Positions 13,440 to 62,645 of a DNA stretch of 64,000 bases are shown piece after piece. The position numbers were made by a program, and so were the translations under genes. The notes under the pieces were generated by a model. It saw only the letters and a list, made by a program, of their open reading frames with translations. It was not told the origin of the DNA and did no database searches. Source of the stretch: Octopus sinensis (lineage: Eukaryota); assembly GCF_006345805.1 (NCBI RefSeq), contig NC_042997.1:106888001-106952000 (forward strand), in the 5' to 3' direction. Numbering within the stretch: the stretch's first letter is position 1; the number at the start of each line of letters is the position of its first letter.

Positions 13440-13628
13440 GGTTCACATAAGGCGGCGGGGGAAGAGTGCTGCATTTTAAGATTCACCACTTACAACCGGC
13501 AGAAGCGGCGGATGTTTAGTTTGCTTCAGTCATTCGCAACGTTTTGCCTCTAATGTTGCAGTTCTTACCGCTCCTTGGCACCCATGATTTCTTACCTCGT
13601 TTGGCCAACAACAAAAAGCTGTGCGAAG
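13440..13628 (+). promoter_or_regulatory. CpG-rich putative promoter / first exon ending in a splice donor
   Basis: Local CpG/GC enrichment that I could not match to any repeat in the window (GGCGGCGGGG at ~13451, GAAGCGGCGGATG at ~13502). Donor AAG|GTAATG at 13628/13629. Confidence 0.5.
13584..13628 (+). CDS. Candidate first coding segment (model A: MISYLVWPTTKSCAK, phase 0). Model B starts at ATG 13553 (MLQFLPLLGTHDFLPRLANNKKLCE, phase 1)
   Basis: ATG 13584 to the donor is exactly 45 nt and joins in frame to the 22539 exon. ATG 13553 gives 76 nt and needs the 17-nt exon at 22190-22206. Both start contexts are weak. Confidence 0.35.
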
Positions 13629-16600
13629 GTAATGTATAATAATAACATATATGTATATATATATACACACATATATATATATATACACCATACTTACTAG
13701 CCTTCGACTTTTTTTTTTATCCAAAGGGGATTATTTACACTCTTTTTTTTTTATAGTTTTATTTACTTCGAGATCCACCATTCCGAAAAAGAATTATTTA
13801 TATATGTGTATGTTTGTGTTTATGGAGTTTCTGTTTATTGTTTACGTAGGTTTATTCTCTTCACTTGTAATATATGCGTGTATGCTGTATCGAGTAAAAT
13901 ATTGATCTCCTAACAAAAGATGAATTTTAAAAGGGCTATATATATATATATACATACATACATACACAGAAATATGGCGTTAGAAGCATAAAAGGTAAAA
14001 GCAACCGGATAAAACAGACTTGGTTTGACAAAGTATTCAATATAATTGTTATTCTGCTGCATGGGAACTCGGAATTCTATTTAAATTCCAATCTTTTTAT
14101 TTATAATTTGCTCTCATGTTCTCTCGTCTGTCGCCCTTATGACAAAGAAATTACCGTTATAAAAACACTACTATTAGTAGTAAAACATGAATTTTACTGC
14201 ACACGTATTCCTTAGCTGAGATTCTTTAAAGTTTAAAAATTGAAAGCCAGTTTGTTTTGGTATTAGTACCACACACGCACGTATATATATATAAAAGATA
14301 ACTATGTGTAAACATTAAGATAAATAGATAAAGGCAAACGTTATGACACTTGTCATGCCTAATGGCATGTTAAGACGAGAAAATAACTCTGGATAATGTT
14401 TTCCTCATTGTTACCAATAAAAATAACCAACGGGCTACACCCAGTCATATAAATATGTGTGTTTGTTTACATATCGGTACCAATTAAAATACATGTGTGT
14501 ATTAAATATCTGTGCATGTACGTGCTATAACTACTGATGAAGAGCTGTTAAAAAGGGAGTCGTTACTTCGACCCAGTTCCTACTCCCAGTTGGCTTTATT
14601 AAATTTGAACGAAGGGATGGAGATACCTAGTAAATTCAGTGAGGCTTTACCAAATATTTTCATATGCGTAGCTGTATTTTCCTTTCATTTCTATTATTGT
14701 TTAGACTAATGAGGCAGGGCAGCACCCATGGCTTTTTTTCAGGATTTCTGAGGCTGTTAGAGAAAGAAGGGAAGAAATCACAGCTTTTTTTTTTGTTACC
14801 ATAAAACCGGAGACCAAGCCCGAATGCTTGCGAGGCACTCAATGACCAGATGGTCATATTAAACTGAAGTAAGGTATAGTTCACCCAGCAAGATTCCGCA
14901 CAGTTTCCGGTTACCTTGTTTTGGTCACAAGGATTGGGTTCAACTGGCTCGCGTAGACATGCTTTCACACGTGTTTGTATACTGCATTATATATGTGTGT
15001 GCGCTGGCGTGGCTGTGTGGTTGAAAGTTTGGTTCAAAACTACGTGGTTCTGGGTTCAGTACTACTATATGGCACCTTCTATTATCGCCTCGAGCCAACC
15101 AAATGTAAAACAATAATGATCAAATGATTTTGAACTAACATATGTGTGTCTGTTTGCCCCCTACCATTGCTTGATAACCGGTGTTGGTGTATTTACGTTC
15201 TTGTAAATTAGTCGCTCAGTAAGAGAAGACTAAAACCCTGCATAGCCTCAACTAGATGACGGAAACAAGTTGATTGTAACTGGAATGAAGGGATTCATCA
15301 CAGTTCATTTTTTTGTTCTGAGTAACTCCTGTGTTAAAATCCGTGTAACATAACTTAGTTTTTACCATGGCACAAAATACTAGACTTGTAATCAGTGTCG
15401 TTTTAAGGGCACACTGAGCAGGGGCCCCATTTTGATCTATTTATGCTGTAGTTTGCTTGACCCAGTACCTTGATTTGCCCAGGCGCCTATATTATGCTAC
15501 GGTATCTCTGTAGTTTTTAGTGAACATAACTTTGCATATTGAGTATGGGTCTTTGACTTTGATCCTTATGTTCAATTGCTGATCGATTTTCCCCTCCCTA
15601 TTCGGATATGCCTGTAATAAAAATTATTGTATACCCAAGAGAAGATAAACAAAATATCATTGAAGGCTTTGTTATAATTTTGACATAAAAAAGACTTTCT
15701 GTTTTTTATTGTTTTCCTTCTTAGCTGAAATTCCTTGCTATCCTAAACCTTTTTGATTGTCTTTGAAGAAGTTTTGCTAAATTAACTTGAGAATTTCCCG
15801 ACAGTTTTAGAATGGTTTATTTTGATTACATTTCGATAAATTGCTGAGATAAAAGGAAATTGGTGTTTTGAAGTTGCTTTGTGATATCTTATAACCAAAA
15901 GATTCTCGCCATTCACTAATTCTAAAGACTGTAATATGAGAGAATTTCGTCTAGTTTATGAAGAAGACATTATGAAGCAAATATGTAGAGAGAAATAAAG
16001 CGATTATATAAGAGAAAAAGAGTAAACATAGGAGAAAAAGAAAATGGGTGTATTTAGGAATAACTATGATGATCATGTGTTTATGTTGTGAAGGTTGATG
16101 TATTATTTTTGTAGAATAAACGTAGAAGTGTGAAAAACAGTGAGCTCAAGAGAAACAGGAATTTTAATAATACAAAAGAGAAATACAGAAGGCTTCACTC
16201 AATAATTTAATATTGGACAGTGAAAATATTTGACTTAGTATTACGGTATTGTGTGTCTTCCGAACTCCAGATATTTTGATGTGAAAGGGAGTGTCTGTGT
16301 TAGTAATTTTATTATAAACTGACTGTGTATTTGAACTTAAGATCTGCCATGTGATAATTCATCATCTTCATCATAGATGTATCTTTTTTTTTTAATGTTT
16401 TGTCAGAATGAACAGCATGACTTTCCCTAAATTCAAGATTGGTACTCATGCACAAACACACTTTTTCTGCAATACTTCTGCTATCAGCAATGAGGCATAT
16501 CTTTTCTGATTTATCTGAAGAATTGATTGCATGCTGGACTGGCTGAATAAACAAACATCTACATGTACGCACACACAATTTATTGAATAACCTTTGCTTG

Positions 16601-17947
16601 AAACACAGGGAGTCACACACACGCGCACATGATGGCTTTCTGTTTGGTTTCCATTGACCAAATTCCAAGTCTTGGACCACATGTATATGAAGTAAACTTC
16701 TTAATAACACAGCTAATCTGCAGCTGTGTGTAGATATATGTGTGTCTGTAGGTGAGGTCAGAACAGTACTGGAGGTGTAATTTTCGTCACGGACAAGTGA
16801 ATTTTGGAAGAGAGGCCTTGCAAGTCTATCAGATAGATGGAAGTGCATTGTAGAAAATGGAGAGTCTATTTTTGATTAAAAAGAACTTAATTTTGAAAAA
16901 TAAAAGAAGTAAAAAAAAATATTATTCATGGGATGACCCAATACATAAACATACAGGTGTAGTTGTTTGGTAAGAAGCTTGCTTCCCAACCACATGGTTC
17001 CAAGTTTTGTCCCATTGCATGGCACCTTGGACAAGTGTCTTCAAACAATAAGCTTGGGCCAACCAAATCCTTATGAGTGGATTTGGTAGATGGAAACTGA
17101 AAAAAGCCCATTCTATATATGTATACATTTATGTGTGTGTCTGTGTTTGTGCTCCTACCATCACCTGACAACCGTTGTTGGTGTGTTTATATCCCTGTAG
17201 CTTAGCAATTCAGCAAAAGAGCCCAATAGAATAAGTACTAGGCTTACAAAGAATAAATCCTGGCATCAATTTCTTTGAATAAAAAGCCCTTTAAGTAGTG
17301 CTCCAGCATGGCCACTATCAAATAATTGAAACAAGTAACAAAATATACACACTGACTGATGAATTTGCAGAATAATATTAATGCCAGACAAATTCTTTGC
17401 TGCATCTGTTCTTGATCTTTACATTCTGAGATAAAATCCCCCAAAATGTTTATTGAAATTTTTCATTATTATGGCTTACCTGATGATAAACCATGTCTAG
17501 CATGACCTGCTTTTTGAAAAAAAGTTGCCCATGCATGTCTTGGATATTCTGGGAGTGTCTGCTTGTAACCACATGGTCACCTACAAAAAACATTAATTGA
17601 AAGGCATCCTGCAGGCCAATGTGAAGTCATACTTGATTACAGATGACAGCTGTATTGTTATATCTAAATATAGTTTATTTTTGAAGTTGACTACTCTGCC
17701 ATTACTTCAAATTTCCTTTTCCTATGCTAGCATGGGTTACACAAATACATAATGCTGAATCATTGCTTCACAGCCAGATACCCTTCCTATTACTATTCCT
17801 AACCTATTTTTCAAGCAAGAGAGTTTTTCATTCCATATGTCTTTTAAAATACAGAACTAGCATATGGTTTATTTACAAGGAAACGGCAAACATTAATTGT
17901 AGCTCGTGCAATTTCAGAATATAAACAAATTTACACACACACATATT

Positions 17948-22538: not shown

Positions 22539-22582
22539 AATAATCTTTATGAGCCTATTAGTGTTGATTACATTGAAGATGG
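22539..22582 (+). CDS. Candidate 44-nt exon (NNLYEPISVDYIED-G; phase 0 to 2)
   Basis: tttttttttactag|AATAATCTTTATGAG...GAAGATGG|gtaaat. Open frame with Tyr motifs YEPI and YIED. Confidence 0.55.
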
Positions 22583-24672
22583 GTAAATTCAATGTAATTA
22601 CATATGTCATAATTCTTCATTAGCAGCCCTGAACAGTCTGGACTTGATATTGTCATTCTTTTGGTGTGTTTTGATCAGGCAAGAATACAACTAGAACACT
22701 ACTTGAACAATGAGATTTAGCCCATATAAACATGCTAGATATTACACTTCTACCTAGTACTACAATTGAGAAGTTTATAGTGTCTAAATAGATGCTCTCA
22801 TTAGTATGGACTGCAAAACTTATCTCATTACCACCCACACTGCACTTCCACCCAGCTAACCTCTGCATGACACTGTGTTCAATAGATTTCCTGATTAAAT
22901 CCAAAAGGTCATATCTGAGTGTTAAGTATACAGTTGACTATCAGATTTCCGTGGATCTATTCAAGTCAAATTAACTGGGAGTACTTAACAGTAACAACAA
23001 CAATAATCATTTAATTTGATGTATGTTGCATGTAATTTTATATTGAATCAATGAGATCAATGTTTTGTTTTTTCTTCATCATCATTGTTGTTGTTTGTCT
23101 TCTGCTTTTTCTGTGCTGACATGAATTGAATAAAGACTTACTGAAGCAATGTTGTGGCCAGATACCCTTCCTGATGCAGCCATTTTTATTTTCAAATTTA
23201 TGTACTTATTTTACTGGTTTTCACACATCAAAATGAGATCTAGGACAGTCAAAAGTCACTACTGCTTAAAGCGATGTGAATGCAGACACACACACACATT
23301 TATACATTCATGCATATACATGTCATCATTATCACCATATGATAATGATGACATTATGTGCATGTGCACACACACACACATACACGTATCGCATTTTTAT
23401 ATTTCTACAGAAATTCAAGATGAACATAAATATCACTAATCTAGGTAGACTATCAAATGTCAAGAATACTGATATGCAAATCAATGATGGAGAATGGTTT
23501 GGTCACTTGACAGAAGAATGTGTTGTTTGTTATAGTTCCTAGCATCAAATAATCAAGTTAATATAAGGAAAAAGGTATGAATACCAAACTGCTATTGATT
23601 AGAACCTGCTAATATTTCAGAGAGATGAACTGGCAGAATGATTAGGCACAGCAGTAGCTGTGTGGTAAGTAGTTTGCTTACCAACCACATGGGCAAATGT
23701 CTTCTGCTATTGCCTCAGGCCAACTGAAGCCTTGTGATTGAATTTGGTTAGCAGGAGTTACTGTTGTGTGTGTACATGTGTAAGTGCTTGTCACTCGTAA
23801 CAAAAAGGGCAAATCATCATCATTATCATCGTTTAACGTCTGCTTTCCATGCTAGTAGGGGTTGGACAATTTGACTGAGGGTTGGCAAACCAGATGGCTG
23901 AACCAGGTTCCAATATTGATCTGGCAGAGTTTCTACAGCTGGATGCCCTTCCTAACGCCAACCACTCCAAGAGTGTAGTGGGTGCTTTTACGTGCCACTG
24001 GCACAGGGACCAGTAAGGCGGTACTGGCAACGACCTCACTCGAATGTTTTTTTACGTGCCACCAGCACAAGTGCCAGTAAGGCAGTGCTGATAACGATCA
24101 CGCTCGAATGGTGCCTTTTACATGCCACCGGCACAGAAGCCAGTTGGTAATGATCACGCTCAGATGGTGCTCTTAGCACCCCACTAGCATGGGGCACAAG
24201 TACTATATATATATATAAATAAATATATATACATACACACATACACTACCTTTTATGTATTGAGTTCTGTATTTTATAAGTTCCTGTTGAATCAGCAGAA
24301 ATTTTCATATATCATCATCAGCACCTTTCATGGTGGTGTGGATTGAGCATAACAGCTCATCAGAGAGTATTTTACTCGTGGTTCATTTTGATTTGGTTAC
24401 TAAACAAGTGTCATGTCCTCAACAAGATTGAGTTTTCACAGCTTCACACCTTGCACAATGTACTGGATACATTTCTCATGACACCAACACTAGAGAAGTG
24501 ATCATGTCCTCGAGTATGGTTAAAAGGACTTAATATCCCCCAACATTCTGCTTGTTCATCAGCTTTTTTACTGAGTGAGAAGCATGAGTGATAGATACAG
24601 ACTTTAAGAAGCATCTATGCTTATCTATCTATCTATATATATATATATAAGACCAAAGTGTATGCACGCTGC

Positions 24673-28409: not shown

Positions 28410-28763
28410 TTCACTCGTTTCGGTCATTTGACTGTGGCCATGCTGGAGTACTGCCTTTAGTCGAGCTAATCGACCCCAGGACTTATTTTTTGTAAACCTA
28501 GTACTTATTCTATCGGTCTCTTTTGCCAAACTGCTAAGTTACGGGGGACGTAAACACGCCAGCATCGGTTGTCAAGCGATGTTGGGGACACACATATATA
28601 CGACGGGCTTCTTTCAGTTTCCGTCTAACAAATCTACTCACAAGGCTTTGGTCGGCCTGAGGCTATAATAGAAGACACTTGCCCAAGTTGCCATGCAGTT
28701 GGACTGAACCCGGAACGATGTGGTTCGTAAGCAAGGTACTTACCACACAGCCACTCCTGCGCC
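28410..28763 (-). mobile_element. Young copy of the most abundant SINE (octopus OK/OR2-like by recall). Further copies near 950-1080, 4690-4880, 8021-8355, 14995-15240, 16930-17340, 23650-23770, 26720-27090, 34720-34870, 37740-37900, 38290-38740, 46450-46630, 58990-59400
   Basis: Shared motif GGCACCTTGGGCAAGTGTCTTCTACTATAGCC…GATTTGGTAGATGGAAACTGAAAGAAGCCC, internal TA/TG microsatellite, CpG-retaining in this copy. Confidence 0.8.
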
Positions 28764-29770
28764 TATGCCAATATTTATTTACATCCTACAGCTATAATAA
28801 ACCCTAGTTACATAATTCATTAATAATTATTTTATTTCTCGCCATATTACGTATCTTGAATTTATTCACAATATATTTGTTTCTGTAATTTCAGCACATT
28901 TTTTTTTGATTATTCTATTTATTTAATTATAATTTTTTATTTAAATTATCTTTCTTTAATTCCATTATGATTATCCTCATATACTTTCGTTTGTTTCTAT
29001 AAATATATGAGAATGATTAATATAATTACAATTGTTGAATAGGGAAATGTTCTTCAACAAACTATTTTGAATAGTAACATTGTTTTTGGTTTTCTTTTTA
29101 GTTTTATTTAAATAACTACTACTTTATGGCTATGCCCTTCTACCTTAATTTCTGTAAATCTTTTTTTATATATAAATATATACCATTTCTTTTTAGATTA
29201 TTGATGTATCTTTCTGTTATATTAGTATATATGTAGGAGTTATATTTAGGTGGCAGTGTATTGTTTGTTTCGTAGTATCTACTCTCCACCAGTTTCTGAA
29301 CATCAGTAGATGATAACATTTGAGTGATACCATATGGTTTTTGAAGTTGTACCAAAATAATCAGATACAGCAGGGCATTTCTGTTTTCAAATATATGTTA
29401 GAAAGAATGGTGAAGATACACGCCATAGTTCTAAAAACAGTGATTGCTCTTTCATAATAACCTTTGTCTTTTATTACACTTTTAAAGTATACAGTATATA
29501 TTCCACTATAATACTATTATATATATTACATAAGGGAGGGTCTATGAATGAGTGATTTTGGTGTCTATGCACAAATACATGTCCTACAGACTGATAATAG
29601 CATTCTTTGTCATTTATATCCCAGTGGTGTTTTTTTACAGACCTATATTGTCAAACATATTGTCTCTCTCTCTCTCAACAATTTCCACAGTAGTCTTTCT
29701 ATGTTTGAGTGTATGCAAAGGTATCATATAATTGTAGACACCTGTAATTTCAATCATTGCTTCTTAATTC

Positions 29771-31615: not shown

Positions 31616-34057
31616 TTAAAAAAAACCTCATAAATGGGTGGGGTGAGGGAACTCTCTAGACACTAGTTTGGCTTTAAAAATTTACCCTCATGAATGTCAC
31701 AATACGACTATATACACACACTACAAAATTTGTAGATACTGGAGTAGAACATTAGCAGTAACTGTGAAGGAATACTTTAGGGTTGGCATGAAAAACTGCA
31801 TTGATTTTTACCTTTGTCCAGTATCTTCTAAAAGTATAAAGAGAAAGACATAGATACAGGTGAACTGTTCTCTTAAAGTGATTACTATCTACCTAAGCAA
31901 ATCATTTTAAGAATGTAAATCTATTTAATCAATATGTATATAATACCTAATTATATATGTGTATAGCTACATTATATATGCAAGGGTAGGCATGGCTGTG
32001 AGTTTACGCAGTTCACTTTGTAACTGTATGGATCTGGATTCAGTTCTACTTCATGACCACTTGATCAAATGTCTTTAGCTATGTGTATGAAACTGGTTGA
32101 CAGAATGGAAAGCCTGTATGTGTGTGTGTGAATGTCATATTCTCATTATCACCACTTGAGCAGAACAGTGTCTTTGTTTTTATTTTCCAGTAAGCAAGGT
32201 TTGTGTAGTTTCAGCTACACATCATCATCATAATCATCATCATTTAACATCCATCTTTCATGCTGGCATGGGTTGGACAGTTTGTCAAGAGCTGGCGACT
32301 CGGAGGATTGTTCTGAGCTCCACTGTCTGTTTTGGCATGGGTTTTTACGGCTAACCTCTTCACAGAGTGGTCTAGATGTTTTTTTTACGTGGTACCAACA
32401 CAGCAAGGTCTGTTTTGACATTATTTTCACATGGTACCAACACAGCAAGGTCTGTTTTAACATGGCTTTTACATGGTACTAGCACTGGCAAAGTCTGTTT
32501 TGACATAATTTTCACAGCTAGATACCCTTCCTAATTACAAGCGCTTTAAAGAGTGACCTGGGTAGTTTTCATGTGGCACCAGTGCCAGTGAGGTCTGTTT
32601 GGCATAGTTTTTATGGCTCTTTCAATTTGTGAGGGCTAGAAGAATGAAAACACCTTACTTGGAAAACAGGTCAGGATTGACAACAGGAAGAGCATCTAGC
32701 CATAGAAAATAAGCCATTAGTTTTGTCTAACGTCTGAAAGCACAGAACAAAAGACATAGAAAGGATAATGATGATGATGGTATAATATATAAGAACATAT
32801 GTTTTTGTACATTGCCATCTGTTGTTTGAAATAATTGTAAATAGTCATAATAAAAGCTGTTTTTCAAATGCTCAAATCAGTAGCTGATTAATAATTTTTG
32901 CTAGCAGAATGATAGGAATTCATAATGGTAATTTTTTGAGCTTTTATATGTGTAAGTCATCAAATTTTTACCCCAAATAAGTCACCCAGTTTACAATATT
33001 AAATTCCTGTTTTAATTATTCAAAATTATTTACAAAAACTACTTCTGCTTCTCAACTGTTGCATTGCCCAGTGGTAAGGATGTTAAGCTCATGATCATAA
33101 GATTGTGAGTTCATATCCTGGGCCCATGAGCAAGATACTTCATTTTGTGTTGCTCCAGTCTACCAAGCTGTAATGAGTACCAACCAGCTGATAATGCAGT
33201 GCTCTATCTCTCTCTCTCACATCCTGGATGCTCTGCTGAATGAAGTTGGGAGGACTAACTACTTGCAACTGTATAAGCACCTAAAATGATGAGTTGGAAA
33301 TGCATGGTACATGTTATTAAGCCATATTCACTCAAATGATGGCTGACTAATTTTTTAGTTGCTCTAATCTACCTTACTTTATTTTTGCATTTCTTTTGAT
33401 AATGTTTTATCTTCTCTCCCTCACAAAGGTTAATTCTAACTACATATTCTAACCCACCTTTATCTTGGCCAATACCTCTACCCTTTTGTCAACTGTCATT
33501 ATCTGTTCTATTCTCATTATTTATTCATATCACCTAAGTCTTCTCGCTGTTTCCAACACCTGTTACTTTTTCTAAAGGTCACCATGCCTCCACAATTTTT
33601 TTTTTAAAGATTGATTTCAATAGACTTATTTCCAACAAGAGTAATAACTTATGGTTTATATGGAACAAGCAAATAAACTATGGGACATTTCCCCATCCCC
33701 ACCCTCAACTTGTTTAGGTCCAAAACATGATCAGGTAGGTCTGTAATCAGAAATGTTCCATCCATAACCATCCTGTCTCTTTTGACAATACAGCTCTAGA
33801 TTATACAATGTGTTCTTTTTTAAGATGAGAGATTGTGATTTAAAGGTAGTTTGCCAGTTATTTCTTGCAGGCTAGAGGATCCTTCTTTGGTTTATTTCCT
33901 ATGCACCTTTATATTGTGGCTTTATTTTCTGGTGGTAAAATATTACTTTGGTTTGTATATCAGGCTCTTTAATTGAACTAAAATATAAGATTGCATACTG
34001 ATAATTTTGTGTTCAATTATATTAGCGAACACAGATTTCTTCCTTCTCACCTCTTAG

Positions 34058-34073
34058 AAATCACCATAGTTTG
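34058..34073 (+). CDS. Candidate 16-nt microexon ((G)NHHSL; phase 2 to 0)
   Basis: tttcttccttctcacctcttag|AAATCACCATAGTTTG|gtattt. Complements the 44-nt exon (44+16=60 nt). Confidence 0.5.
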
Positions 34074-38488: not shown

Positions 38489-40192
38489 TATGTATGTATG
38501 TATGTGTGTGTGTTTGTCCCCCCTCACTACCACCACTACTACTTGACAACCAGTGTTGGTTTGTCTACATCCCTGTAACTTATTCTATCAGTCTATTATT
38601 CTATCAATCTATTTGTTTTGCTGAAGCACTAAGTACCAGACTTTTAAAAAAATAAGTACTGGAGTCAATTTGTTTGACTGAACACTTCAAGGCAGTGCCC
38701 TACCATGGCCACAGTCCAATAACTGAAACAAATAAAAGCTAAGACACATTGCATAAAAAGTTAAAATAAATAAATATAAAAAAAACATAACCATTTTAAA
38801 GCTAAAAATATCCAAAACTATTGTTTATTTAGTTAATCATAGTAGAATGTAAGTAAATTATGACTAGCATGTTTTTCAAAACATTTGAGCATTAAAATGG
38901 CATTTTTTTTAAAGCCACACTTTATATTTTTAAAAATTGCAGTGCACCAGATAGCCTTTGTAATGTGCACTTGCTGCACTTTGGTTCATTGTTTGAGAAG
39001 CACTGGACTAGATGCTTTGTTGTATCTTGTTTGATACTTAACATTTCCTTATTTTAGGTTGGAGGTCTTTTCAATTATATGCCATGTCCTCTGTTTTAAA
39101 TGAAAGAAAATTTTCACATTTGTCATTTCTCATAGTATTATCTAGAATTATGATTTTTTTTTTTTCTTTTTACACTTTATCTCTACCCTGTAGCACAAAA
39201 GCAATACACACATACACACTAAACAATTATTGATATACATTCAATTTACACTCTCTTTTCTTATAACTCAAAAAACTTTGTTGTTGCTGTTCAGCTCTTT
39301 ACATTCTGAGTTCAAATTCTGCCAAGGTTGAGTTTGATTTTCATCCATTTGGTGTTGACAATATAAAGTACCAGACAAGTACTAGGGTCAATGTAATCAA
39401 CTTGCCTCATCCCCCAAACTTCAGGCCTTATGACTACATATATTAAAAATAGTAGTTGTTTAGCACTATGTCATCTTCTCTGGACATGTAAACCTATGAT
39501 AAAAGGTATTCCAGTTATGACCATCCAGTCCTATGTTATCTAATATTCACTTCTGTTTTTCAAAACAGAATTTTCTAATTTAAGAGAGATATTTGGCTGC
39601 TATGGAAGGCTTCCATCCATTCTAACTTTATGGAAAAAGCAGTCAATTCAGTAACACCTCAGTACTTAGCTGATATTTTATCAACCTCCTTAAGGATGAA
39701 ATTTTAAGTTTACCCTAACAGGATTTGAACTCAGAACATAAATGACCATGACTAAATAAATACCATTAGGCATTTTTCCTAATACTTACAGTAATTCTGT
39801 CAAATCATCACTTGTTTTCTCAAGTTTATAACTTTAGGTCATTTAAAAAAAAGTTAAAATTTTCACCTTGTGACTTCTGCAGCAACTTTATAATCCCTAA
39901 AGCACGTAGATAAATTGAAAATAAAATCTACATGAGGTTATTTATTAAGAGGGATATACCAATAAGTAGGTTACTTATTTCAAGCCTTCCTCTTTTGAAA
40001 GATATTATTGGCCTCTGAACTTCTGTCAACCAGGATATTTTGACCACAAACACAACACAATATTTGTAACTGTGGTTGAGAGAAGGGGCACTGTCTTATG
40101 TGATTTTAATAGAAACAAGCCTAAAATAAATAAGGGTTCTGTTTGTTATAGTAGCTGACTAGTTCAACCTTTTCTCTTTAATTCCTAAGCAG

Positions 40193-40213
40193 TCAGTCAG
40201 ACCTCTTGTCAAG
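40193..40213 (+). CDS. Candidate 21-nt microexon (SVRPLVK), or 24 nt (QSVRPLVK) from the upstream AAG of a NAGNAG acceptor
   Basis: ccttttctctttaattcctaagcag|TCAGTCAGACCTCTTGTCAAG|gtaaga. Strong donor, symmetric phase 0. Confidence 0.6.
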
Positions 40214-42101
40214 GTAAGAATTGTAATCCCTAAAGTCACCTGTCACTCAGTCAATGTCATTGTAAGGGGACATTGCTCTTATGGTAAACCTTACCTGTGT
40301 TTGTTTTCCCTTTTTTAATGCCGTTGTTTCTCTTTGTACAGGAGAAAGTGTGTGTATACATGCTTGTGTCTTAGAAGTATGTGCATATGTATACATACAT
40401 ATACACACATCTGTAAACATTTGTACAATTCCATATACACACAGTGTGACAATAAAGAAACAGATTGGGTTCAGAGAAATGTTTTATGAAAATAAAACAG
40501 TAACCATTTGTTGTTAAGTCTTCCAACTAATCCTGTCCACTTTCAGTGCAGTTCTCCATTCACTCCTTCCACATTATCAAAGTTTCTCTGAATCCACTAG
40601 CTAGAATACTTACAGTAACATCAAACTGTATACATCAGATTATAAGGATTGTTCTAGGCAACCACCTTATCTTCTGTTTAGCAAACAGTTGCCTTTATTC
40701 ACTGGAAAGCCTGAAATTTTTATTACCTGTGGTCAAACTTTGAATGAGCAGACCACATTGCTTTGGCCATCATTGTAGATTTTTTTTTTCTAACAGTAGA
40801 AGGTTGATTAGCTAACCCTGTTGGTATCAACCTGCCTAAGATTACCTCTTTTTTTTGTTTTTGTGATGCAAGCTCATCATTTTAAAGTCACCTAAATTAA
40901 AACCTCTCAAAATTGCATGTTAATTTCTTCCTAATATCAGCTTAATAATGACATATTTATAGATTCATTTTCAAAATTGATTGAAATATCAACTATGTAT
41001 TTCTATAGAAATATGGCCCACAAAGGATTATTATGCTGATCCTGAAAATCGTAACCTAAAAACCTACCTCTTTGGCTCTAATAAAGTTCATCAGCCCTGC
41101 TGTACACAAGTTTTTGTGTGTGTATGTATGTATATATGTGTGTGTGTGTGAATGCATAATATATTAGTTACTCTTAATATTGCATGGTAGTTATGAGTGT
41201 CACATGGTAGTTATGCAGTGTCATTTATTTCCAATTTTCTTTGAAATCTTGTCTGGCCATAGAAAATTTACCTCAATAAGCTCCCCACTGCCTATGCTTG
41301 CAAAGGTGGATGTTAAAATGCTTTTGTGCCATGTGTTTAAGAAGTTCACTTCACAGCTTATAACTCTGGCCAGGTTTGATTTACTGCACAGCACCTCAAA
41401 CAGTCACCATGTGATATTTCATCCTTCCAGAGCCAACAAAATAAAGCTCCAGTGAAGTAGTGCTGGGGTTGATACTATCTACTAATCCTCTCCCCTCCCA
41501 CTCATATTTGCTGGCCCTGTGCCTAAATCAGAATCAATTTTTATTTTTTTCTGTAGCTGTTGTGTTGTGACTGTATGATGTTTCCATTCATAAACTTCAT
41601 CAAAACAGGAAAAAAAAAATTGACCTTTTGTTATATTTAATCTTGCACTGTAAATGTCAACAGTTTATCATTAACTCTATTTAGTTTCTGAAGGTTTTTT
41701 TTTTTCCTCTTTCTTTAATTATCCAGTAGAAAAAAAAAACAGGAAGAGTGAATCTTTTCTGATACAGTTAATATTTCTCCTTAGTCTCTATAGATATCAA
41801 TATAGTATCTGTAATCCCAGATACTTGAAATCATTTTCACACAAAAGAAACCTCAAACAAAAATTGTTGAATTAGCTTTGAATTGTGATGGCTAGCATTG
41901 AACAAGATATCTCACAATATGGGAAGCAAATCTCTCTAATAACCTTAAAATATTCTTTTTTGCTTTTTTTAAGAGTCGTTGCAGAAAGTATATTGATATA
42001 TGGATTTGAATGCTGGATACTTGTAGCAATAGAAAGCTGATTAAATAGAACATAATAAATAATCATCCAGCTTCCCCACTGGCTTGGGTTGAGCAGTTTA
42101 A

Positions 42102-42320: not shown

Positions 42321-43959
42321 TTAATAGGGTTTGACCAGTCAGAGAACTGTATAATCCACGAATGTCTACTTTGCATGGTTTCTAAGACTGGTTGCAGTTC
42401 CTCATGCTGACCGTTTCACAGAGTGTACTGGTGGATGCTGTTTATGTGGTGACAGCACTAGTAATCATTGCCTTTTAACTTGAAAGGCTAAGGGCATAAA
42501 ATGGTCCTATAACTGACAGAGAATAGCAGTGAGAGTGAGCGATGATTCTAGGTTTAGGGCTTGGTAAGTAAGAGGAGAGAATGTAATATATACCAAAATT
42601 ATAAGGAGGGTGAAAAACATTTCTAGGGAGCAACGTTTTTCTAACACTAATGAATAATCCTGCTAATCAACTGTTTTATGATAAAAATAATTGTTTGTAA
42701 TTTAGGCACAAGGCCAGCAGTTTTGAAGCAAAGGAGTTAGTTGATATTATTGATTGCAATACTTGACTGGTACTTTAGTTTATTGCGCTCAAAAGAATAA
42801 AAAGCAACATAAACCTTGGTGGGATTTTAACTCAGAACATAAAGAGCTGGAACAAAATAGGCATTTTTCTGATTCCACCTCAATAATATGAAGTTGTCAG
42901 ATCCCAGGATCTTGAGCCATAACAATTGACCAAGACTTCTATAGAAGAGGGGTAAGTGTTGAAAGATTAATAAGGATAATGTATTAACTTCTCTAGGTCT
43001 AGTTAGGTTACTCTTTTATTTCACTCTTGAGTGTTATGCAGTAGAGAGGACTCTTACATATGCTGGATTTGATTTAGTCAATTTTAATTTAATATTAATA
43101 ATTATTTTTACTTTTGATCATGCATTTAAAATTTTTTAAATAAAACACTAGTTACAAATTTATAATGTGGAAAATAAATTACTGTTTTTTTTTTTTTTTT
43201 ATTTATTACTGATCTAATTTTACCTATTCCGTACTGATTTAATTTTACAAATTCTAATTGAAGCTTTGAAAAAATAATTTTTTTTCATTCTGAGCTTATG
43301 AAATTATGACTAATTCTATTTAGCAACTTAAAAATATTTACTTGCAAATAGTTTTCAGGGTGGAGTGGGGGGAATGTAGATTAAATTTACATAACAACAC
43401 TAATCTTATTTTTGCAATGAAATTCTCTGTAATATTTTTTTTTTTTTTTTGTCATATCTAGATATTGAGGTTGATGTAGGTTTATTTTTAGTAATCTGTT
43501 ATCTCTCAGAATTTATATCCATTGCTGAACTTAATATTTGCATATTCTATATGTACATACAAACATTTTATATTTACTATTCAATTACTCAATACAGTCA
43601 TCAGCTTCATTTTACAACCATTTTTCCATATGCTAGATGGACCAGTATGGTCCAAGTCAGATACTATAGAGTTTTACTGCCCTCTTATGTGGGTCAGGAA
43701 CTACAACTTTTATATACCATTTTTGGCATGGTTTCTATGGCTGGATAACCTTTTCCCCAGCCATTTTACAGGGTGGATAGAATACATCTTCTCCTGGCAT
43801 TGATACTAAGTCTTGTGCAATTCCCTGATTTGTCAGCTGTCAAAAATCCAACCCATGCAAGCATGGAAAACAGACTTTAATTAATGATGGTGATGATGAT
43901 GATTTTCTATGTATCAGTTGGGTGGGTCTTCTCCAGCACTTAGTGTTGTCCTTTCTTAT

Positions 43960-44556: not shown

Positions 44557-45399
44557 GTAATATTCCCACAGATTTTACATCTGAAATGTTATGTATTTAT
44601 AGTTATGCTAGCAGTGTTTATTTTTGCATTAAATAATAGGTCTTGTTTTAACTAACGAAGGTGATATTGCTTAACAATGTAATACTTTTATTTCTTGCCA
44701 GCCTAAAATCTAAAAAACAAAACTACTAGTATAAGTAGACCATGGGAGTAGTAGTTAGATTACTTTTGAAATAATACTGGATTGGTATGTATGGCTGCAT
44801 GTGTTTTAGACTTATTCAACCCACATTAACTTGGAGAAACAAGCTTTAAAATAATGACAATAAGCTTATAATAATTTAAAATAACAACAATTATGTCTTT
44901 AAAGAATTTTTTTTTTTTTTTTCAATAACTGCGACTTTGTTTTCCCTATTTGTGACACAGTCATTTTCCTCTCTTCAGATTATTTATGACTGTTTTTTCA
45001 GATTCTTTTTAAAGTTTCTTTTTTTGTTATCATAAATAGTAATGTACCATTATAGTTTCATTAATTTGGTTTGCTGCTTTAAGATTTATTGTTACTTTAG
45101 GTTTCTTTTGTTTTCATAAAGTTTTATATCTCAGAAGTTAGTAACTTCATCATATCATATATGGCATTTATTTCTGTATTATTGTATGGTTTTTTTCCTT
45201 CATCCTGACCTAACATAGTTTATTCTTAGAAAGTGTAGCCTTGAATTTACATGGCATCTTCAAATTAAATCTGACACAGACTCTATGACTTATTCCTACT
45301 GACAAATAGTAGATTTAATCAAATTCAACAACTGTTTACCCATTTCAGATCAGCCATTAAGTTTGTATGACCTTCATCATACCACATTTTGAATTAAGT

Positions 45400-45790
45400 T
45401 AACTGAAGACTATCTATTCATCAACTACTTTATCACATCTGCCATAGCTATTTATAAATGCAACTGTTCGCACTGCATTTCAATTGTATCTACTGGAGCA
45501 AACCCTCTTTCAAACAAATTATTCTTTCAGCCTGTCTTGAAACCTGTTTATCCAAACATTCTTATTGTTGCCATATATACTCCTCTTCTAGCTCCCTTAC
45601 TGTGTAATCATTCTGTACCATATTTCCACCTCAGTTAACTATTAGCTTCCTCTCCTTGTTTATTTTCATTGAATACTTGAAGCAGAATAAAGCTTTTCCA
45701 ACTTTATTCTTTCAATTGGACTTTATAAAGAAATAGCCTCTATCAACACCATCTTTGTAACTCAATCCATTGCAACTAGCACTCTTTGTT
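45400..45790 (-). pseudogene. Older, heavily decayed RTE LINE fragment
   Basis: Short motifs such as VDR(G/A) and ARRGVYMA, amid many stops. Confidence 0.4.
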
Positions 45791-47330
45791 TATTTTTCTT
45801 CACTTTTCATGTTGCTTTTTAGTAACAAAATACACTGATTCACATAACTGGAAAGACTATATAAATATATATATATATATATATATCATAAACTAAATGG
45901 TATCTTCTTTAAGGCAACTAGTTAACAATGTTTTATATTTATTTATTTTACTGTGGGTCCTTTATTTTTGATTTGGAAAGTTTTAATTGTGTAATGTAAA
46001 AATTGATTTCAAATTTTGGCACAAGGCCGCCAATTTCGGAGTTGGGAGTAAGTCGATTACATCAACCCCAGTGCTCAACTGGTACTTGTTTTATCTGCCC
46101 CAAAAGGATGAAAGACAAAGTCAACCCTGAGGGAATATGTAAAGAGTTGCAACTAATTTCTGTCACAAGCATGACACTCTCCTTAACAAAGACATTTCAT
46201 TTGCTGGTTCAAGATTGATCCTAGGCAACAAAAGGACATTGCATACTGAGAAGTGGTACATTACTTATCACATCCTTTGATAGACCAGTATATAATGTGC
46301 CAGGAATCTGTTTTATTATATCCTCTCTTGGATCTTTTTATAAGAATAAATTATTCAGTTGTATTTCTGACAGGCTATTGGGATGTCAACAAGGTTATGG
46401 AGGCATTAAGTTTAGATAATGGCCAAAGACATAAAGTGGTATTAAAGGTGCTGGCTTGGCTGTGTGGCAACAAGTTTGCTTTCTGACCACATGCTTTTGG
46501 GTTCAGTCCCACTGTGTGACACCTTGGGCAAACGTCTTCTACTATAGCCCTAGGTCAACCAAAGTTTTATGAGCAGATCTGGTAGATGGAGACTGAAAGA
46601 AGACTATTGTGTGCATGTAAGTGTGTTACTGTCTCCTTGCTTTAGCATCATGTGATAGTTGTAAGCAAGTGTCACCATTATGCAAGTTGTGTCCATCTTT
46701 TCCTATCTTCCATGTAAACATGTCTAGGATCATAGGGGAATACTTTATTTGAAAATCTGTGAAGGTTGCTGACAAGAAGAGCATCTGGCTGTAGAAAATC
46801 TGCCTCAACATTTCATTCCTACCCATGTGAGTATGGAAAAGTGGACATTAAAACAATAGGGAATGATGATATACTAAATATATGTTTTAGAATTAAACTA
46901 CCCTGGGATTAGATATAAAGTAATTAAACATTTTCCTTCAGTCATCCAGTTTAAAAGAAAATAATTTTGCTGTAAGTATGAAGTATATCTGACCAGCTAT
47001 TTCTCACATTGCTACATCCTGGCCACACTAATTGCTATCCCAAGTTTGTGCAGAATCATATGCCTTCACCCAGTTAATATTCTCTCAAATTGTGCTTCTC
47101 TTCGTTTGTCTTATGTACTCTGAAGCCTCTTGAAATATGCTACATTTTTCATAACCTTGTAAAAATAATTGAATTTAATTAGACAATTAAATCAAATTAA
47201 ATTTGAGATAAAGAAGGCAGTAGTGGTAGTAGTTGATTTTAGGTCTGGTAACTTCTATGTGAATGGTCAACCTAGAAATAGCAGGCAAGTCCTCATCAAA
47301 TCGCTTCTCTCCATCTAGAAAAATAAATAA

Positions 47331-47603
47331 GCCTCGTCTGGCACCTGTGTCGGTGGCACATAAAAAACACCATCCGAGCGTGGCCGTCTGCCAGCCTTGT
47401 CTGGCACCTGTGTCGGTGACACATAAAATCACCCACTACACTCTCGGAGTGGTTGGCGTTAGGAAGGGCATCCAGCTGTAGAAACACTGCCAGATCTGAC
47501 TGGCCTGGTGCAGCCTTCGGGCTTGCCAGACCCCAGTTGAACCGTCCAACCCATGCTAGCATGGAAAGCGGACGTTAAACGATGATGATGATGATGATGA
47601 TGA
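47331..47603 (+). mobile_element. Young RTE-type retroelement 3' end with internal ~70-bp tandem units and a (GAT)n tail. Relatives at 23820-24196 (-), 32218-32620 (-), 36330-36600 (-), 63835-64000 (+)
   Basis: …CCATGCTAGCATGGAAAGCGGACGTTAAACGATGATGATGATG; tandem CTGGCACCTGTGTCGGTG units. Confidence 0.75.
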
Positions 47604-48278
47604 GTGATGCAGTTCTGTAAACTGTTTTTGTAAAAGAGACAGGATTGTTATAGCTAAGAACACTCAAACAAGGTTGACTTGTGGTTATACAGCATCAACC
47701 AAGTTTATTTTTGTCAAAAGTAACTTAGTTTTCCTAACAATGTGCTTCAAATTAGCATATTTAATGTTTTAAATCAAGAAAAACATAACTCTTATTTTTT
47801 TTAAATAATGATGTGGGCGTGTTGTACAGAGAAGTATGTTTTCATAAATATACTATGAATACAAAACATTTAAACATCACTGTTTATTTAACTATTAACC
47901 CTTTTGATATCAGTATGTCTGAGACCACCCTTGGTTCTATGATACAAATTTTTTGCTTTAAAATTCTCTAAATTAAAATCTTTCATTAAAATTTCATGTT
48001 TATGCTCCAAACACAAGCTTAACAATCCTTTCTACTAATAGGTACAAGGCCTGAAGTTTTGTGGGGGTGGGGGTGTTAGTTTGTTACATCAACCCCAGTA
48101 TTCAATTGGTGCTTATTTTTTCCAACCCCAAAAAGTATGAAAGGCAAAGTCAGCTTTGGCGAAATTTGAACTGAGAACATAGAGATGGACAAAATGCTAT
48201 GCTAACAATTCTGACAGCTCACAGCCTTAAAAACCAATTTTGTAATAATAAAATTGTTAACTTCATTATATCCAAAGT

Positions 48279-51115: not shown

Positions 51116-51482
51116 TTAAAACCAATTTTGTTACTGTGAAATTTATGCCATTTATGGATATTTTCCCCCTCAAGTTCTTCACACAGGATTGATGTATAAT
51201 GATAAATATGCTATGTAATGCTACTTAGATTTATGTAAGGTGAGATGAAATTAGTATTCATGATTTTGAAATCCTTATGTACAAGAAATGCAATCTGCTG
51301 AACGGCCAAAGGTCTCAAATAAAAATTATGTTGTATGTTAAGGATTTCTCATCAATGTCTTTTTTAAAATTGTTCTGCTGATTTCCACTTCTTTTGTGAT
51401 GCTATAACTGCTCGTTATTGTCTTAGTGGGTATCGAGTGGCTAAAAATATATTTTTTTTAGTACTTTTTTTCATTTTTTCAG

Positions 51483-51500
51483 CCTAAATCACAAACTTTG
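51483..51500 (+). CDS. Candidate 18-nt microexon (PKSQTL)
   Basis: tttttttcattttttcag|CCTAAATCACAAACTTTG|gtaagt. Near-consensus acceptor, perfect donor, symmetric phase 0. Confidence 0.65.
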
Positions 51501-51712
51501 GTAAGTTTAAATAAATTCACTGCTTAAGTGTCACTGTGTTGCACTAGCCATAAAACTAGTTTGACAATATGCTTATAGTTATGTTCTATAGTCTGATAAT
51601 GTTTAGTGCACCTTTGTGTTAGTACTATTACAACTGGAAAATTAGTTGCATTATGAAGATATCCCTTGGGATTGTCCTTTTGAAACTACTGGAGACAATA
51701 TGTCAGTATCAC

Positions 51713-52482: not shown

Positions 52483-52512
52483 GACTTAAGATATGAATTG
52501 AAAAGAATGTTG
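52483..52512 (+). CDS. Candidate 30-nt exon (DLRYELKRML)
   Basis: ttttttaatttttatag|GACTTAAGA...AGAATGTTG|gtacat. Symmetric phase 0, open and helix-like; the donor is only moderate. Confidence 0.5.
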
Positions 52513-56803: not shown

Positions 56804-57827
56804 TATATGAAATGTCAAGTTATATATCCTTTTTCCTATTCTTTCTGTCACACTGTAGGAACGTGGAAGGAGAAAGTAGTAGCTGTGCTGGGAGAGCATA
56901 GAAATAATGTAGATGTAGGTTAGATAGCTACATAGGTAAGAGATAGGCAAACAGGTGAATAGATGGAATAAAACAAGAAAATAGAGCAAGGCTTGAAGCA
57001 GAAAGGTTAAGAATTTAATGAAAATCAATAAACCTCAACTTTTTTCTACCGTTAATCTCTCCCTATTACTCATGATTGACATCCATCACTTCTATCTCCC
57101 AACACTCATTTTCACTTCTCTCTCTCTCTCTCCGTCTAGCTCCTTCCTATAGTTTTCTCATGCCCAGTCATGCTATTTGTATCTAATCTCTTTACCAACA
57201 ATTACAGTTGCCTGTCAGTCCATCGTTTCCTTATACTGTGTTTTCTGTTACTCTCTTACTCTGGTTCTCTTTCATGCCCTTCACAAAGGACAAGCTGGTC
57301 CTTGGGCACTAGTGAATAAAAGAAGACAATGAGGGGAACTACCAAGGACAGGGCAACCTCTAGTACTGGTACTACAATGAAATGTCCTCTTTATATCCAG
57401 TTAAATGCACCAAAAGTGGGATGTATCAGCAAGATATGATTCCTACCTGTTTAACCAATTGCAGCACAGAAAGGCTGATGTAAAATGATGGTGATTATGC
57501 TAATATGTGCATGTATGCATGAACGTACAAACACACATACACACACACACACACACACAACCCAGGTTATGAGATTGTTAGAGTTGAGTAAGATGCCATA
57601 TAGTATCTGTTCTGGCTCTTTGTGTTCCCACAGCAATGATTACAATGACACTGGTGCCAAGCTATTTTGGCCCAACTTGGTGGCCTTTCCCTTGGATAAA
57701 CATCAGTAATAAAGAAGGGAATCTTGCCTTAGTGGGCAACAGCTAGCCTTCTTCAAAAACATCTTGTCCAGGACCACACACTTACACACATACACTATGT
57801 ATAAATAAACAGTCCTGTACATGCAAT

Positions 57828-57955: not shown

Positions 57956-58271
57956 CAATGGGACAGTATAAATATTTAACTATTTAGTCAATAACAAACT
58001 TAGTATTTGCTAATTCTCCTATTCATCAAGTTTACCAAGTGTGATGATAAATATCATTAGTCTATTATTTATCTCTTACAGACATAAATGCTTTGGCTGT
58101 TATTTTTCTTCTTAACTTTGCCCACCACCACCACTCTGCTCTCAGTAGTGATAAACTTATCTTGTAAGCTATCTTATTATTGTGATAAACTTATCTAAAT
58201 AAATACATTCATAAAAGTGAATAGATAATAAATACTTTTATTTCCTGTTGCAACACACTGTTTTTTTTAAA

Positions 58272-59897: not shown

Positions 59898-61457
59898 TTA
59901 AAGAATGTGATGACAAACAATAAGTCCTGCTATCTAGAAAAGTTCTTATATAAAGTGAGAGTGGTTTATTGGATATTTTGAGTGAAACCTGCTTCAGCTT
60001 ATAGCTGAAACCAAAGGGTTTGGCATGAGTGAAAAGTCAAACTTTTTAGTTTCAAGTGTAAGTTGAAGGTGAGTATAGTTGTAATAGTTATTCCCTCCTA
60101 GTAGAGGGTTCTGTTTTATATTACTATCTTATATTTTTAGAATTAATAAATACACAATCACAGAAACATATGAAATATTTATGTTAATATGTTTGTATTG
60201 TAAGGTGACAAATTAACAGAATCATTGGGGCAACAAATTATATTTCAACCTCACTGACCTCAGCTTTGCCTTTATTCATTGACCTTGGGTTAATAAAGTA
60301 CCAGTCCCTTCCAGGAGTTGATTGTTCTCTTTTTTTTTGTTCTCCTCCAGACAGTGTATTGTGGCCAACACTATCCAATTTTTAAGACACAAATTTGGCC
60401 AGTCTTACAGTAAAATAATGATACATTATGGGAATATCTTACTGATAGAAATATTAGCAAAATATTTTCCTCTACTGTTACTAACTGTTGAGATAGGGTA
60501 GGATTGCCTGAAACCATTTATCAGAGCATCAGGACTAGACATTTTCATTCCTAAACTTGTAACTTTCACCACTTCGTATTAGTTTTCACACTGATTACAA
60601 AGAAATTATTAGAACGATCTTCTTAATGTCATGACAATAATAAACAAATCCTGCCCAGCTGTTAAGCAGTTTGTCTGATAGAGAGAGGGGTGTATGTGAA
60701 ATGTATGTTGCTTTGAAGTATAACAGCTATTATTAAACCCAAAGCTATCTAAGTGGTACTTTGTGTGTGTGTGTGTGTGTGTGTGTGTTGCATCTACATT
60801 TGTTCATGCATGGATTGGGTGGTTCTACAATTGGGTAAGCCTCTTGAAATAACGAGAACACATGCTTTTTTACATCTCAATGTATTTTGCAAGGTTAATC
60901 ATTCTTGGATATCTATTTTCAGCATTGTTGAGACAAGTAGAACAATATATTTGTGTATTTTGTTTCACAATAGCAAAGGGTACAGAATTTGAACTAGTGA
61001 CTTCATAACATAATCATCTACCCTCTTGAAATATAACCAAACCCAACAAACTGTGATTTATTTACTTTTGCTAAAGCACTGTTTTTGCAAATAATCTTTT
61101 TGGCTTAATGACATTTAATTCCATTTCTCTTCAAACTTACCTCTAGAGTAGGTAACAGTAATTCATATCTCCTATAATCCTTGGAAAGAAATCCTTATTT
61201 GCTTATCTTATGAAATACAAGTATTTTGTTAATCAGAAATTTTAATGACTAGCACACCCGCAGTATGTCATCCACTAGTTTGGTTTTTTTTTGTTTTGTT
61301 TTTTTCAATTTTTATTCATTTATTATTTTTTTTATTGGAAGTATTTGGCTAAGTCATATATTTGACTTATTTGAAATATTTTCTTTTTCTCTAATACATA
61401 TATATTATAATTTGTCATATATTTAATGAGTTTTACTTTCTTCTCTTTTTTTAATAG

Positions 61458-62645
61458 ATGAAAGAGGCAAGCAAATCTTGTTCAGATCTGGATCTAGAAG
61501 TTGGTTCCAATATGGCAGAGGATGACCAGTGTGTTGTGCCTGGCCAGCTTATCTATAAGCTACGTCAGCAACTTATTGAAAAAGACAATGCTATAAAGCA
61601 GCTTGGCAGCGAATATGACCACAATCTTTCCAAAGTCTTATCTAGCCTTCTGTACTTAGAAGGCAAACTGCACCGGGAACAAAAGAATATTGTACGCCTG
61701 ATGGAGCAGAAAGACAGTGTAATCAGTCGTCAAGACCTACAAATAAAACAGTTATATAAACGGATATATATTTTACAATCTTCAATAACTGATATCCAAA
61801 GTAAAATGGACTCTAATGGAATGACTCAGTCTATGCATGAGAAATATTCAGTGAACTCTTCAGACTTAGCAAGTAGCACTAAGTCAGATATAACTAGCAA
61901 AAGATCTGAGAAATATTCTAGTAATTCTGACATGACAAGTTCTCAGTCGAATATAAACTCTAACATGAACTCCAGCGTAACAAATATCAGTGGCAATGAA
62001 GGAAATTCTATTTTTAAACAATTTAGTAAGCCTCTTCGTGATAAATTCACTCGTCACAAAAGCAGCGTGGATCTCCGCAGTTTTAAATTACTGAATGATT
62101 CAGATGGGGAATATAACCACCGAAGTATGGAGAATATCCCACAGGTAGTACGGCGTGAGAGAAAAACAAGAGATAAAGAACGATGTATGAGTATTGCAGG
62201 TTATCCAAATTTTGAAAAATTTGAAAATGATCCTGAATTGACAGCTTTTATGAATTCTTTTCATGCCACTAATCAAACATTAGCTGAAGTTTCAGGAAAC
62301 AGTGTTGAAAATTTAGCTCATTCTCAACTAGAGAAGCAGGGAGAAACAAGGGACGGGGCACCAGAAAAAGCTGGTAAGCCAACACACATACAGCTTTTGA
62401 AAGCAAAAGATGATCTCTCACCAACCAAAATCTCTCCTGCCATGACAGAACAACCAAATGGAACATCCATTCACACAAGTCACAGACATACTGAAACAAA
62501 TCCATTAAAATTCCTTCGTGATACTTTCAAACGGAAAGGGAGTCGGCAAGTTAAAAACAAAAAACAGTCATTTAACTTAAAACAGAATACAACCAAAGAC
62601 TCATTGGTAACCCTAAAGTTTAATGAAAAGCATGGAAATTCTTAG
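61458..62645 (+). CDS. Large terminal coding exon (395 codons) of an uncharacterised protein: N-terminal coiled-coil (about aa 30-115), then Ser/Asn-rich low-complexity and basic C-terminal regions
   Basis: Longest ORF by far and free of repeats. It is preceded directly by a long polypyrimidine tract and TAG (ttttactttcttctctttttttaatag|ATG). Heptad-like segment LRQQLIEKDNAIKQL...LLYLEGKLHREQKNIVRLMEQKDSVISRQDLQIKQL. Stop TAG at 62643-62645, followed by an AT-rich UTR. Family not recognised. Confidence 0.9.
   Translation: MKEASKSCSDLDLEVGSNMAEDDQCVVPGQLIYKLRQQLIEKDNAIKQLGSEYDHNLSKVLSSLLYLEGKLHREQKNIVRLMEQKDSVISRQDLQIKQLYKRIYILQSSITDIQSKMDSNGMTQSMHEKYSVNSSDLASSTKSDITSKRSEKYSSNSDMTSSQSNINSNMNSSVTNISGNEGNSIFKQFSKPLRDKFTRHKSSVDLRSFKLLNDSDGEYNHRSMENIPQVVRRERKTRDKERCMSIAGYPNFEKFENDPELTAFMNSFHATNQTLAEVSGNSVENLAHSQLEKQGETRDGAPEKAGKPTHIQLLKAKDDLSPTKISPAMTEQPNGTSIHTSHRHTETNPLKFLRDTFKRKGSRQVKNKKQSFNLKQNTTKDSLVTLKFNEKHGNS

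Follow-up and report, generated by a model that had tools for sequence, protein, structure and literature searches.

What precedes the coiled coil in the protein encoded by LOC115214979, a RefSeq gene of Octopus sinensis, and how many exons are required to encode it? The question is raised by a stretch of 64,000 nucleotides (nt) of contig NC_042997.1 (assembly GCF_006345805.1, positions 106,888,001 to 106,952,000 of the forward strand), which as a whole we term the window, and in the numbering of which, always on the + strand, the features discussed below are placed. Towards the 3′ end of the window a splice acceptor at 61458 opens an open reading frame (ORF) of 395 codons. A first-pass annotation, made from the letters alone, had linked this acceptor to a CpG-rich first exon by means of a ladder of five microexons, located at 22539-22582 (44 nt), 34058-34073 (16 nt), 40193-40213 (21 nt, or 24 nt if starting at 40190), 51483-51500 (18 nt) and 52483-52512 (30 nt), which together would have built a modular signalling N-terminus of 60-75 residues. 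The five segments do exist, each with an AG upstream and a GT downstream, and when joined in phase they yield a stop-free sequence of 1362 nt, or 454 residues, in which the peptide originally quoted is reproduced. It is also correct that the N-terminus is assembled by a splicing process that a list of ORFs cannot show, as a first exon at 13584-13628 (exon C) is connected to the 61458 acceptor over about 48 kb. What we propose is nevertheless of a different kind: very probably, the locus combines one real and already annotated microexon with three alternative first exons, the other segments of the ladder being chance look-alikes, among which the one at 40193 belongs to a conserved intronic block.

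The range of LOC115214979 is 128.5 kb, and the 3′ 62.6 kb of it lie inside the window. Its terminal coding exon, 61458-62645, comprises 395 codons and a stop, specifying the coiled coil and a C-terminal basic motif, and its translation matches the last 395 residues of XP_036359374.1 and of the other isoforms of the protein with 100% identity. Near-identical orthologues are found in Octopus bimaculoides (LOC106874564) and in Octopus vulgaris (CAI9715659/60), and an orthologue with 83% identity in Argonauta hians (GAB1600851.1). The acceptor of this exon (tttttaatag/ATG) has been kept in O. vulgaris, in Argonauta, in another octopod and in one decapodiform contig; the sequence of the other octopod (contig L003) is genomic DNA, not a transcript, and covers only some 300 nt ahead of the terminal exon. 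When the 395-residue protein was used as a query, five clusters were recovered, and the octopus cluster contained 14 members, none of them longer than 420 residues. The product of LOC115214979 is a coiled-coil protein of 395-420 residues, nearly all of which comes from the terminal exon.

The N-terminus can be read from the isoform sequences of four octopod species, namely X1-X5 of O. sinensis, those of O. bimaculoides and O. vulgaris, and the model of A. hians. Ahead of MKEASK, which begins at 61458, these sequences carry only one of three first coding exons, A (MGQANTHTYANNIDIKMLW), B (MDLREMVELLEDCKNTL) or C (MISYLVWPTTKSCAK), each ending in phase 0, with or without the six residues PKSQTL, which amounts to 15-25 residues. 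In O. sinensis PKSQTL is present in X1, X2 and X3 and absent from X4 and X5, the same pattern being seen in O. bimaculoides, and the isoform pairs X2/X4 and X3/X5, all of them Gnomon models, differ by PKSQTL only. Exact matches to C (13584-13628), to PKSQTL (51483-51500) and to MKEASK were found in the window, with canonical splice sites, and these three exons of the window are exactly the coding exons of isoforms X2-X5. Exons A and B were looked for in the sequence of the window and not found; in O. vulgaris the distance from exon B to exon C downstream is 46,968 nt, which places B some 33 kb ahead of the first position of the window. Compared with the proposed ladder, the annotation of the gene has nothing at 22539, 34058, 40193 or 52483, and it adds the upstream first exons A and B. 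A 395-residue isoform of O. bimaculoides, equal in length to the ORF of the terminal exon alone, is known from a listing by length only, and in transcript contigs of squid and cuttlefish a single first exon is spliced directly onto MKEAS. The homologues found in other molluscs start almost at the coiled coil and therefore agree with a short N-terminus, not with one of 60-75 residues. The real N-terminus is 15-25 residues long, and its variants arise from three alternative first exons and from the presence or absence of one microexon.

Within the window, the alternative first coding exon C is a 45-nt segment that starts with ATG and ends in phase 0 at the donor AAG/GTAATG. It is the exact N-terminus of X3/X5 in O. 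sinensis, of X4 in O. bimaculoides and of CAI9715660.1 in O. vulgaris, and its counterpart in Argonauta encodes MISYLFWPTTKSLVK, followed by a GTAA donor. Just upstream, positions 13440-13583 correspond to a CpG-enriched 5′ untranslated region and promoter region: the observed/expected ratio of CpG is 0.88 over 13440-13630, against 0.25 in the intron, and there is conservation with positions 28796-28838 of the Argonauta locus (L001) and further upstream, including the motif CCGG.AGAAGCGG. The CpG richness that had been ascribed to the first exon is thus borne out, as part of a CpG-island-like patch that extends over 13380-13640 (observed/expected ratio 0.76-0.88, GC content 45-49%, for a background ratio of 0.25-0.35) and marks the internal promoter of exon C.

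The segment at 51483-51500, which encodes PKSQTL, stands apart from the rest of the ladder in its isoforms, its conservation and its splice score. It is 18 nt long and in phase 0-0, it ranks second of the 6662 sense candidates of the intron by splice score, and none of the antisense decoys is as good. In Argonauta the corresponding sequence reads cag/CCTAGATCACAAACAAGG/gtaagt: the exon is again 18 nt long, it is bounded by the same ttttttcag acceptor and GTAAGT donor, and it encodes the peptide PRSQTR. The exon lies in a block of 121 nt (51467-51587) that is 78% identical to Argonauta 57328-57449, and the part of this block downstream of the microexon, 51501-51587, is a conserved intronic flank. 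Segment 51483-51500 is a genuine and conserved cassette microexon, alternatively included in the RefSeq models. As for deeper conservation, no homologue of it was found within 10 kb upstream of the terminal exon in the decapodiform genomic contig L009, which is inconclusive.

This microexon resembles the frame-preserving cassette microexons known in bilaterians, including those of the neural eMIC/SRRM4 programme (PMC8797185), in that it is 18 nt long, in phase 0-0, alternative in the RefSeq models and surrounded by conserved flanks, its length having been preserved over the divergence between Octopus and Argonauta. It departs from the eMIC/SRRM4 programme itself, the dependent microexons of which are marked by a UGC motif close to their 3′ splice site (PMC8797185), together with weak splice sites. 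The 40 nt that precede each of the five segments contain no TGC, and the splice sites of 51483-51500 are strong, unlike those of eMIC/SRRM4-dependent exons. Among the other segments, those of 44 and 16 nt are not frame-preserving. The symmetry of the ladder, which had been brought forward as a mark of regulated microexons, is accordingly that of the 18-, 21- and 30-nt segments, which are multiples of three and short enough for microexons (an upper limit of about 27-51 nt), and does not extend to the 44- and 16-nt ones, each of which shifts the frame. Inclusion of the latter two would therefore have to be obligatorily coupled across 11.5 kb.

How much weight should be given to the fact that the five segments join in phase and without a stop? 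We scored the AG and GT dinucleotides of the intron (13629-61457) with position-weight matrices, the values of which were approximate metazoan ones and not trained on octopus, and consequently used from these scores only the ranks against decoys drawn from the antisense strand of the same sequence. The sense strand has 6662 segments of 9-60 nt that are bounded by AG and GT and open in at least one frame, and the antisense strand has 7723. Those that score at least as well as 51483-51500 are 2 on the sense strand and 0 on the antisense strand; the corresponding figures are 9 and 6 for 40193-40213, 30 and 30 for 34058-34073, 138 and 115 for 52483-52512, and 331 and 262 for 22539-22582. Real sites score 6.1-6.5 as acceptors and 3.3-4.1 as donors, and the segments at 22539, 34058 and 52483 have each at least one site far below this range. 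The ranking against decoys, which had been called for at the outset, separates the 18-nt microexon and leaves the 44-, 16- and 30-nt segments inside the range of the decoys.

Taking the segments that score at least as well as the weakest of the proposed exons, a count by dynamic programming of the five-exon ladders that are in frame and stop-free from phase 0 to phase 0 gives 5.5e8 for the sense strand, compared with 2.3e8 for the antisense decoy. Because chance provides such a number of equivalent ladders, matching phases and the absence of a stop carry no evidential weight. It is worth emphasizing that this goes beyond the present case: in long AT-rich introns, phase match and absence of stop in short segments bounded by AG and GT are essentially worthless as evidence, when 1e8-1e9 equivalents are available on either strand. 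What singled out the true microexon cleanly was the conjunction of splice-score rank and cross-species conservation.

The Argonauta hians locus makes an informative comparison, since no more than about 3-4% of the intron can be aligned with it; the aligned blocks include exon C, the microexon and also the terminal exon, all with intact splice sites. By contrast with 51483-51500, which has its Argonauta equivalent, no counterpart was found there for the 44-, 16- and 30-nt candidates by blastn, by short-word blastn or by a peptide scan, and the block around 40193 has been kept with its donor lost; conservation relative to the flanking intron, the lack of which had been named as a ground for refutation, speaks in this way for a single member of the ladder. 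The sites of the three candidates point in the same direction. At 22539-22582 the acceptor scores -1.95, 390 of the 2521 intronic AGs being as good or better, and the segment, whose length is not a multiple of three, has its open frame bounded by TAG and TAA. At 34058-34073 the acceptor is good, and the donor TTG/GTATTT scores -3.67, a value reached or exceeded by 997 of the 2756 GTs. At 52483-52512 a TAG is found immediately upstream and the donor TTG/GTACAT scores -2.63 (790 of 2756 GTs as good or better). The peptides NNLYEPISVDYIEDG, NHHSL, SVRPLVK and DLRYELKRML are in none of the isoform sequences compared. The segments at 22539, 34058 and 52483 are most likely ordinary splice-site look-alikes in an AT-rich intron. 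A transposon origin of the candidates was also considered and rejected, as a repeat check around each placed none in an interspersed repeat.

The segment at 40193-40213 (or 40190-40213) deserves separate treatment. It is in no annotated isoform, and it is embedded in a conserved non-coding block of about 240 nt, 40023-40241, which aligns to Argonauta L001 48013-48262 with 68% identity over 253 columns (E 4e-19). Its donor, CAAG/GTAAGA, is among the top 9 of the 2756 GTs, and its acceptor is mediocre, ranking 117-153rd of 2521. In Argonauta the donor has been lost by a change of G to C (CAGG/CTAAGA); 17 of the 21 positions of the segment are identical there, three of the four changes being non-synonymous, and 28 of the next 30 intronic bases are identical. 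As judged from this comparison, the substitution pattern between Octopus and Argonauta is not that of coding sequence. Rfam has no match to the block, and the folding of 40020-40250 as RNA shows no excess of structure on either strand; a scan of the whole window with Rfam and a tRNA scan found nothing. Conserved non-coding blocks of this kind number at least seven in the introns of the locus, 40023-40241 included, and its most likely role is a cis-regulatory one. The further blocks that are collinear between Octopus and Argonauta, non-coding and intronic, are situated at 14321-14528, 33491-33545, 45366-45691, 46050-46136, 57959-58246 and 60618-60860. The strongest of them is 45366-45691 (E 1e-32), some contain GATAA/TTATC-type motifs, and they are probably cis-regulatory elements.

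We may now weigh the ways in which these observations could be understood. The use of all five microexons between exon C and the terminal exon, giving a modular signalling N-terminus of 60-75 residues with its tyrosine motifs (YEPI and YIED) and a Pro/basic motif, has become scarcely credible. One of the five segments is real, all have their AG and GT flanks and an in-frame, stop-free join, and annotation pipelines can miss very short exons; yet the same pipelines caught the 18-nt exon, while the other four segments are absent from the isoforms of the four species. To this should be added that three segments are without an Argonauta counterpart when all real exons have one, that the splice scores of these three do not leave the range of the antisense decoys, that in-frame ladders arise by chance in the numbers given above, and that neither the 44-nt nor the 16-nt segment could be included without the other. 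Relatives of the joined peptide were also searched for: its 102 residues had no match in 5.8e9 proteins, a weak negative, as the short fragments of the real N-termini were not found either. The N-termini of the homologues are short. The tyrosine and Pro/basic motifs cannot be retained, for they derive only from segments that have neither annotation nor conservation nor splice-score support. A more modest version would keep PKSQTL and add to it a rare or tissue-restricted cassette at 40193(40190)-40213, for which the 240-nt block would be the splicing-regulatory context. In favour of this version are the rank of the donor, a combined score in the top 9 of 6662, a length that is a multiple of three with all three frames open, and a position inside a block that is among the few shared with Argonauta, where the downstream intron is near-identical and where a GTAATC placed 9 nt further on would preserve the frame in an exon of 30 nt. 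This is countered by the absence of the segment from the annotated isoforms, by the destruction of the GT donor in Argonauta, by an exonic part that is less conserved than its flanks, with mostly non-synonymous changes, by the mediocre acceptor together with six antisense decoys that are as good, and by a conservation that extends some 190 nt upstream, in the manner of a regulatory element more than of an exon. A second in-frame microexon encoding (Q)SVRPLVK, restricted to a tissue or a stage, which would provide the protein with two independently switchable inserts, is unlikely on this evidence.

The same conserved block could be read in yet another way, as a non-coding alternative first exon with an internal promoter, from which the donor at 40213 would lead to a 395-residue isoform initiated at the ATG of the terminal exon. 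The existence in O. bimaculoides and O. sinensis of 395-residue isoforms with several distinct transcripts implies that there are non-coding 5′ exons somewhere; about 190 nt are conserved upstream of a strong donor, the only ATG of 40023-40241 is directly followed by TGA, and the shift of the donor in Argonauta would be harmless to a non-coding exon. However, the block shows neither CpG enrichment nor another promoter mark, unlike exon C, and its belonging to a series of at least seven makes a generic enhancer or cis-regulatory role a simpler explanation; the non-coding exon is likewise unlikely. Our preferred reading, of three alternative first exons, a single microexon and chance look-alikes for the rest, has itself to face several points. 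The RefSeq XP isoforms on which it draws are Gnomon predictions, and some of the other segments might yet be included, rarely or in particular tissues. Argonauta is distant, and any exon confined to the genus Octopus would be missed in an alignment with it. The comparison with O. vulgaris is uninformative because its introns are about 99% identical, which makes all candidates trivially conserved. The splice matrices, as already said, are approximate, and the 40193 segment does combine a strong donor with a conserved surrounding. In short, the ladder survives in its 18-nt member, which is real, annotated and conserved, it loses its 44-, 16- and 30-nt members, which lack support from isoforms, from Argonauta and from splice scores, and the evidence on the 21/24-nt member goes neither way.

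With this N-terminus, to which family does the protein belong? A Pfam scan of the octopus protein found no domain, with no DAB2P_C match at E<=1 and nothing other than sub-threshold coiled-coil noise. A profile search in 1.84e9 representatives retrieved homologues of 360-460 residues across molluscs, including Patella, Nucella, Biomphalaria, Haliotis and Sinanodonta, with a few longer or fused models. The conserved parts of the family alignment are the N-terminal coiled coil (..LLFLEGQLrkEQK..), a central ERCxSIAGYP and a basic C-terminal NPFK..KRKGSK..KK.S. When the profile of the family, cephalopods and other molluscs together, was compared with the coiled coil of SynGAP (PDB 5JXC), a match with E 3.3e-7 over 80 residues was obtained. 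Of 17 family members, 8 match the Pfam model DAB2P_C (PF12004) over its positions of about 397-512, the last 115 or so of the model, and three are above the gathering score of 24.3 bits (P0021 with 37.5, P0025 with 26.7 and P0020 with 25.2 bits), with others just below. This link to DAB2P_C and SynGAP is seen only via the family profile, not with the octopus protein alone, and the homology is supported at the family level only. No Pfam match to the RasGAP, C2 or PH domains was found in the octopus proteins or in the mollusc homologues, and the name 'nGAP' borne by some of the latter was rejected as a sign of RasGAP function, as they have no RasGAP domain.

On the strength of these profiles, the product of LOC115214979 is a stand-alone relative of the coiled coil of SynGAP, DAB2IP and RASAL2 (nGAP), and a member of a mollusc-wide family. 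The likeness with these RasGAPs consists of the coiled coil, common to both at the family level, and of the variation by alternative splicing that also affects the termini of SynGAP. The octopus protein differs from them in that it stands alone, with about 400 residues, has its own mollusc-wide tail (ERCxSIAGYP; NPFK..KRKGSK..KK.S) and is devoid of the PH-C2-RasGAP core. SynGAP multimerises through its coiled-coil domain, and its condensation with PSD-95 depends on that domain (PMC7314543).

How might the variable N-terminus be put to use? The mutually exclusive first exons A, B and C, all of phase 0, and the 18-nt phase-0/0 cassette exon feed the single acceptor at 61458. The choice of the first exon would set the targeting of the protein, and the microexon would introduce, just before the coiled coil, a six-residue basic Ser/Thr spacer, or possibly a phospho-acceptor insert (K/R-S-Q-T). 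The N-myristoylation consensus has Gly2 and Thr6. Exon A begins with MGQANT in octopus (proteins P0009 and P0006) and with MGQTQT in the squid transcript L004, from position 1946 onwards. It fits the consensus in both, which suggests that a membrane-targeted isoform may be conserved across cephalopods. The gene resembles the general pattern of alternative-promoter isoforms of which one is myristoylated, in that it has three mutually exclusive first exons, A being the one that fits the consensus; it differs from this pattern in that the myristoylation of the octopus protein is a prediction and that exon A is located outside the window.

The finding is largely ordinary, in that RefSeq already includes exon C as well as the 18-nt microexon and the terminal exon, and in itself it matters little, what remains being the chance yield of 48 kb of AT-rich intron. 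The gene is nonetheless an uncharacterised one, and together with its putatively myristoylated N-terminal variant it may be of interest to those who investigate the synaptic scaffold in cephalopods.

A few observations concern the surroundings of these exons. In contig L009, which comes from a squid or a cuttlefish, a fragment of a Pao-type retrotransposon (PF05380) is called downstream of the gene, at positions 16618-16878 on the opposite strand. Short interspersed repeats of two families are present in the window, at 23813-23991, 43840-43903 and 47437-47609, and also at 8054-8140, 17012-17109, 28599-28690 and 46513-46602; no tRNA-like gene was detected with them, and both families, which also occur many times and in both orientations in the Argonauta locus, look like short interspersed nuclear elements or miniature inverted-repeat transposable elements shared across octopods. 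Finally, in the intron upstream of exon C, the region 6511-7547 gives cross-matches to O. vulgaris that are offset by about 510 nt with 91% identity, suggesting a tandem duplication of about 0.5 kb.

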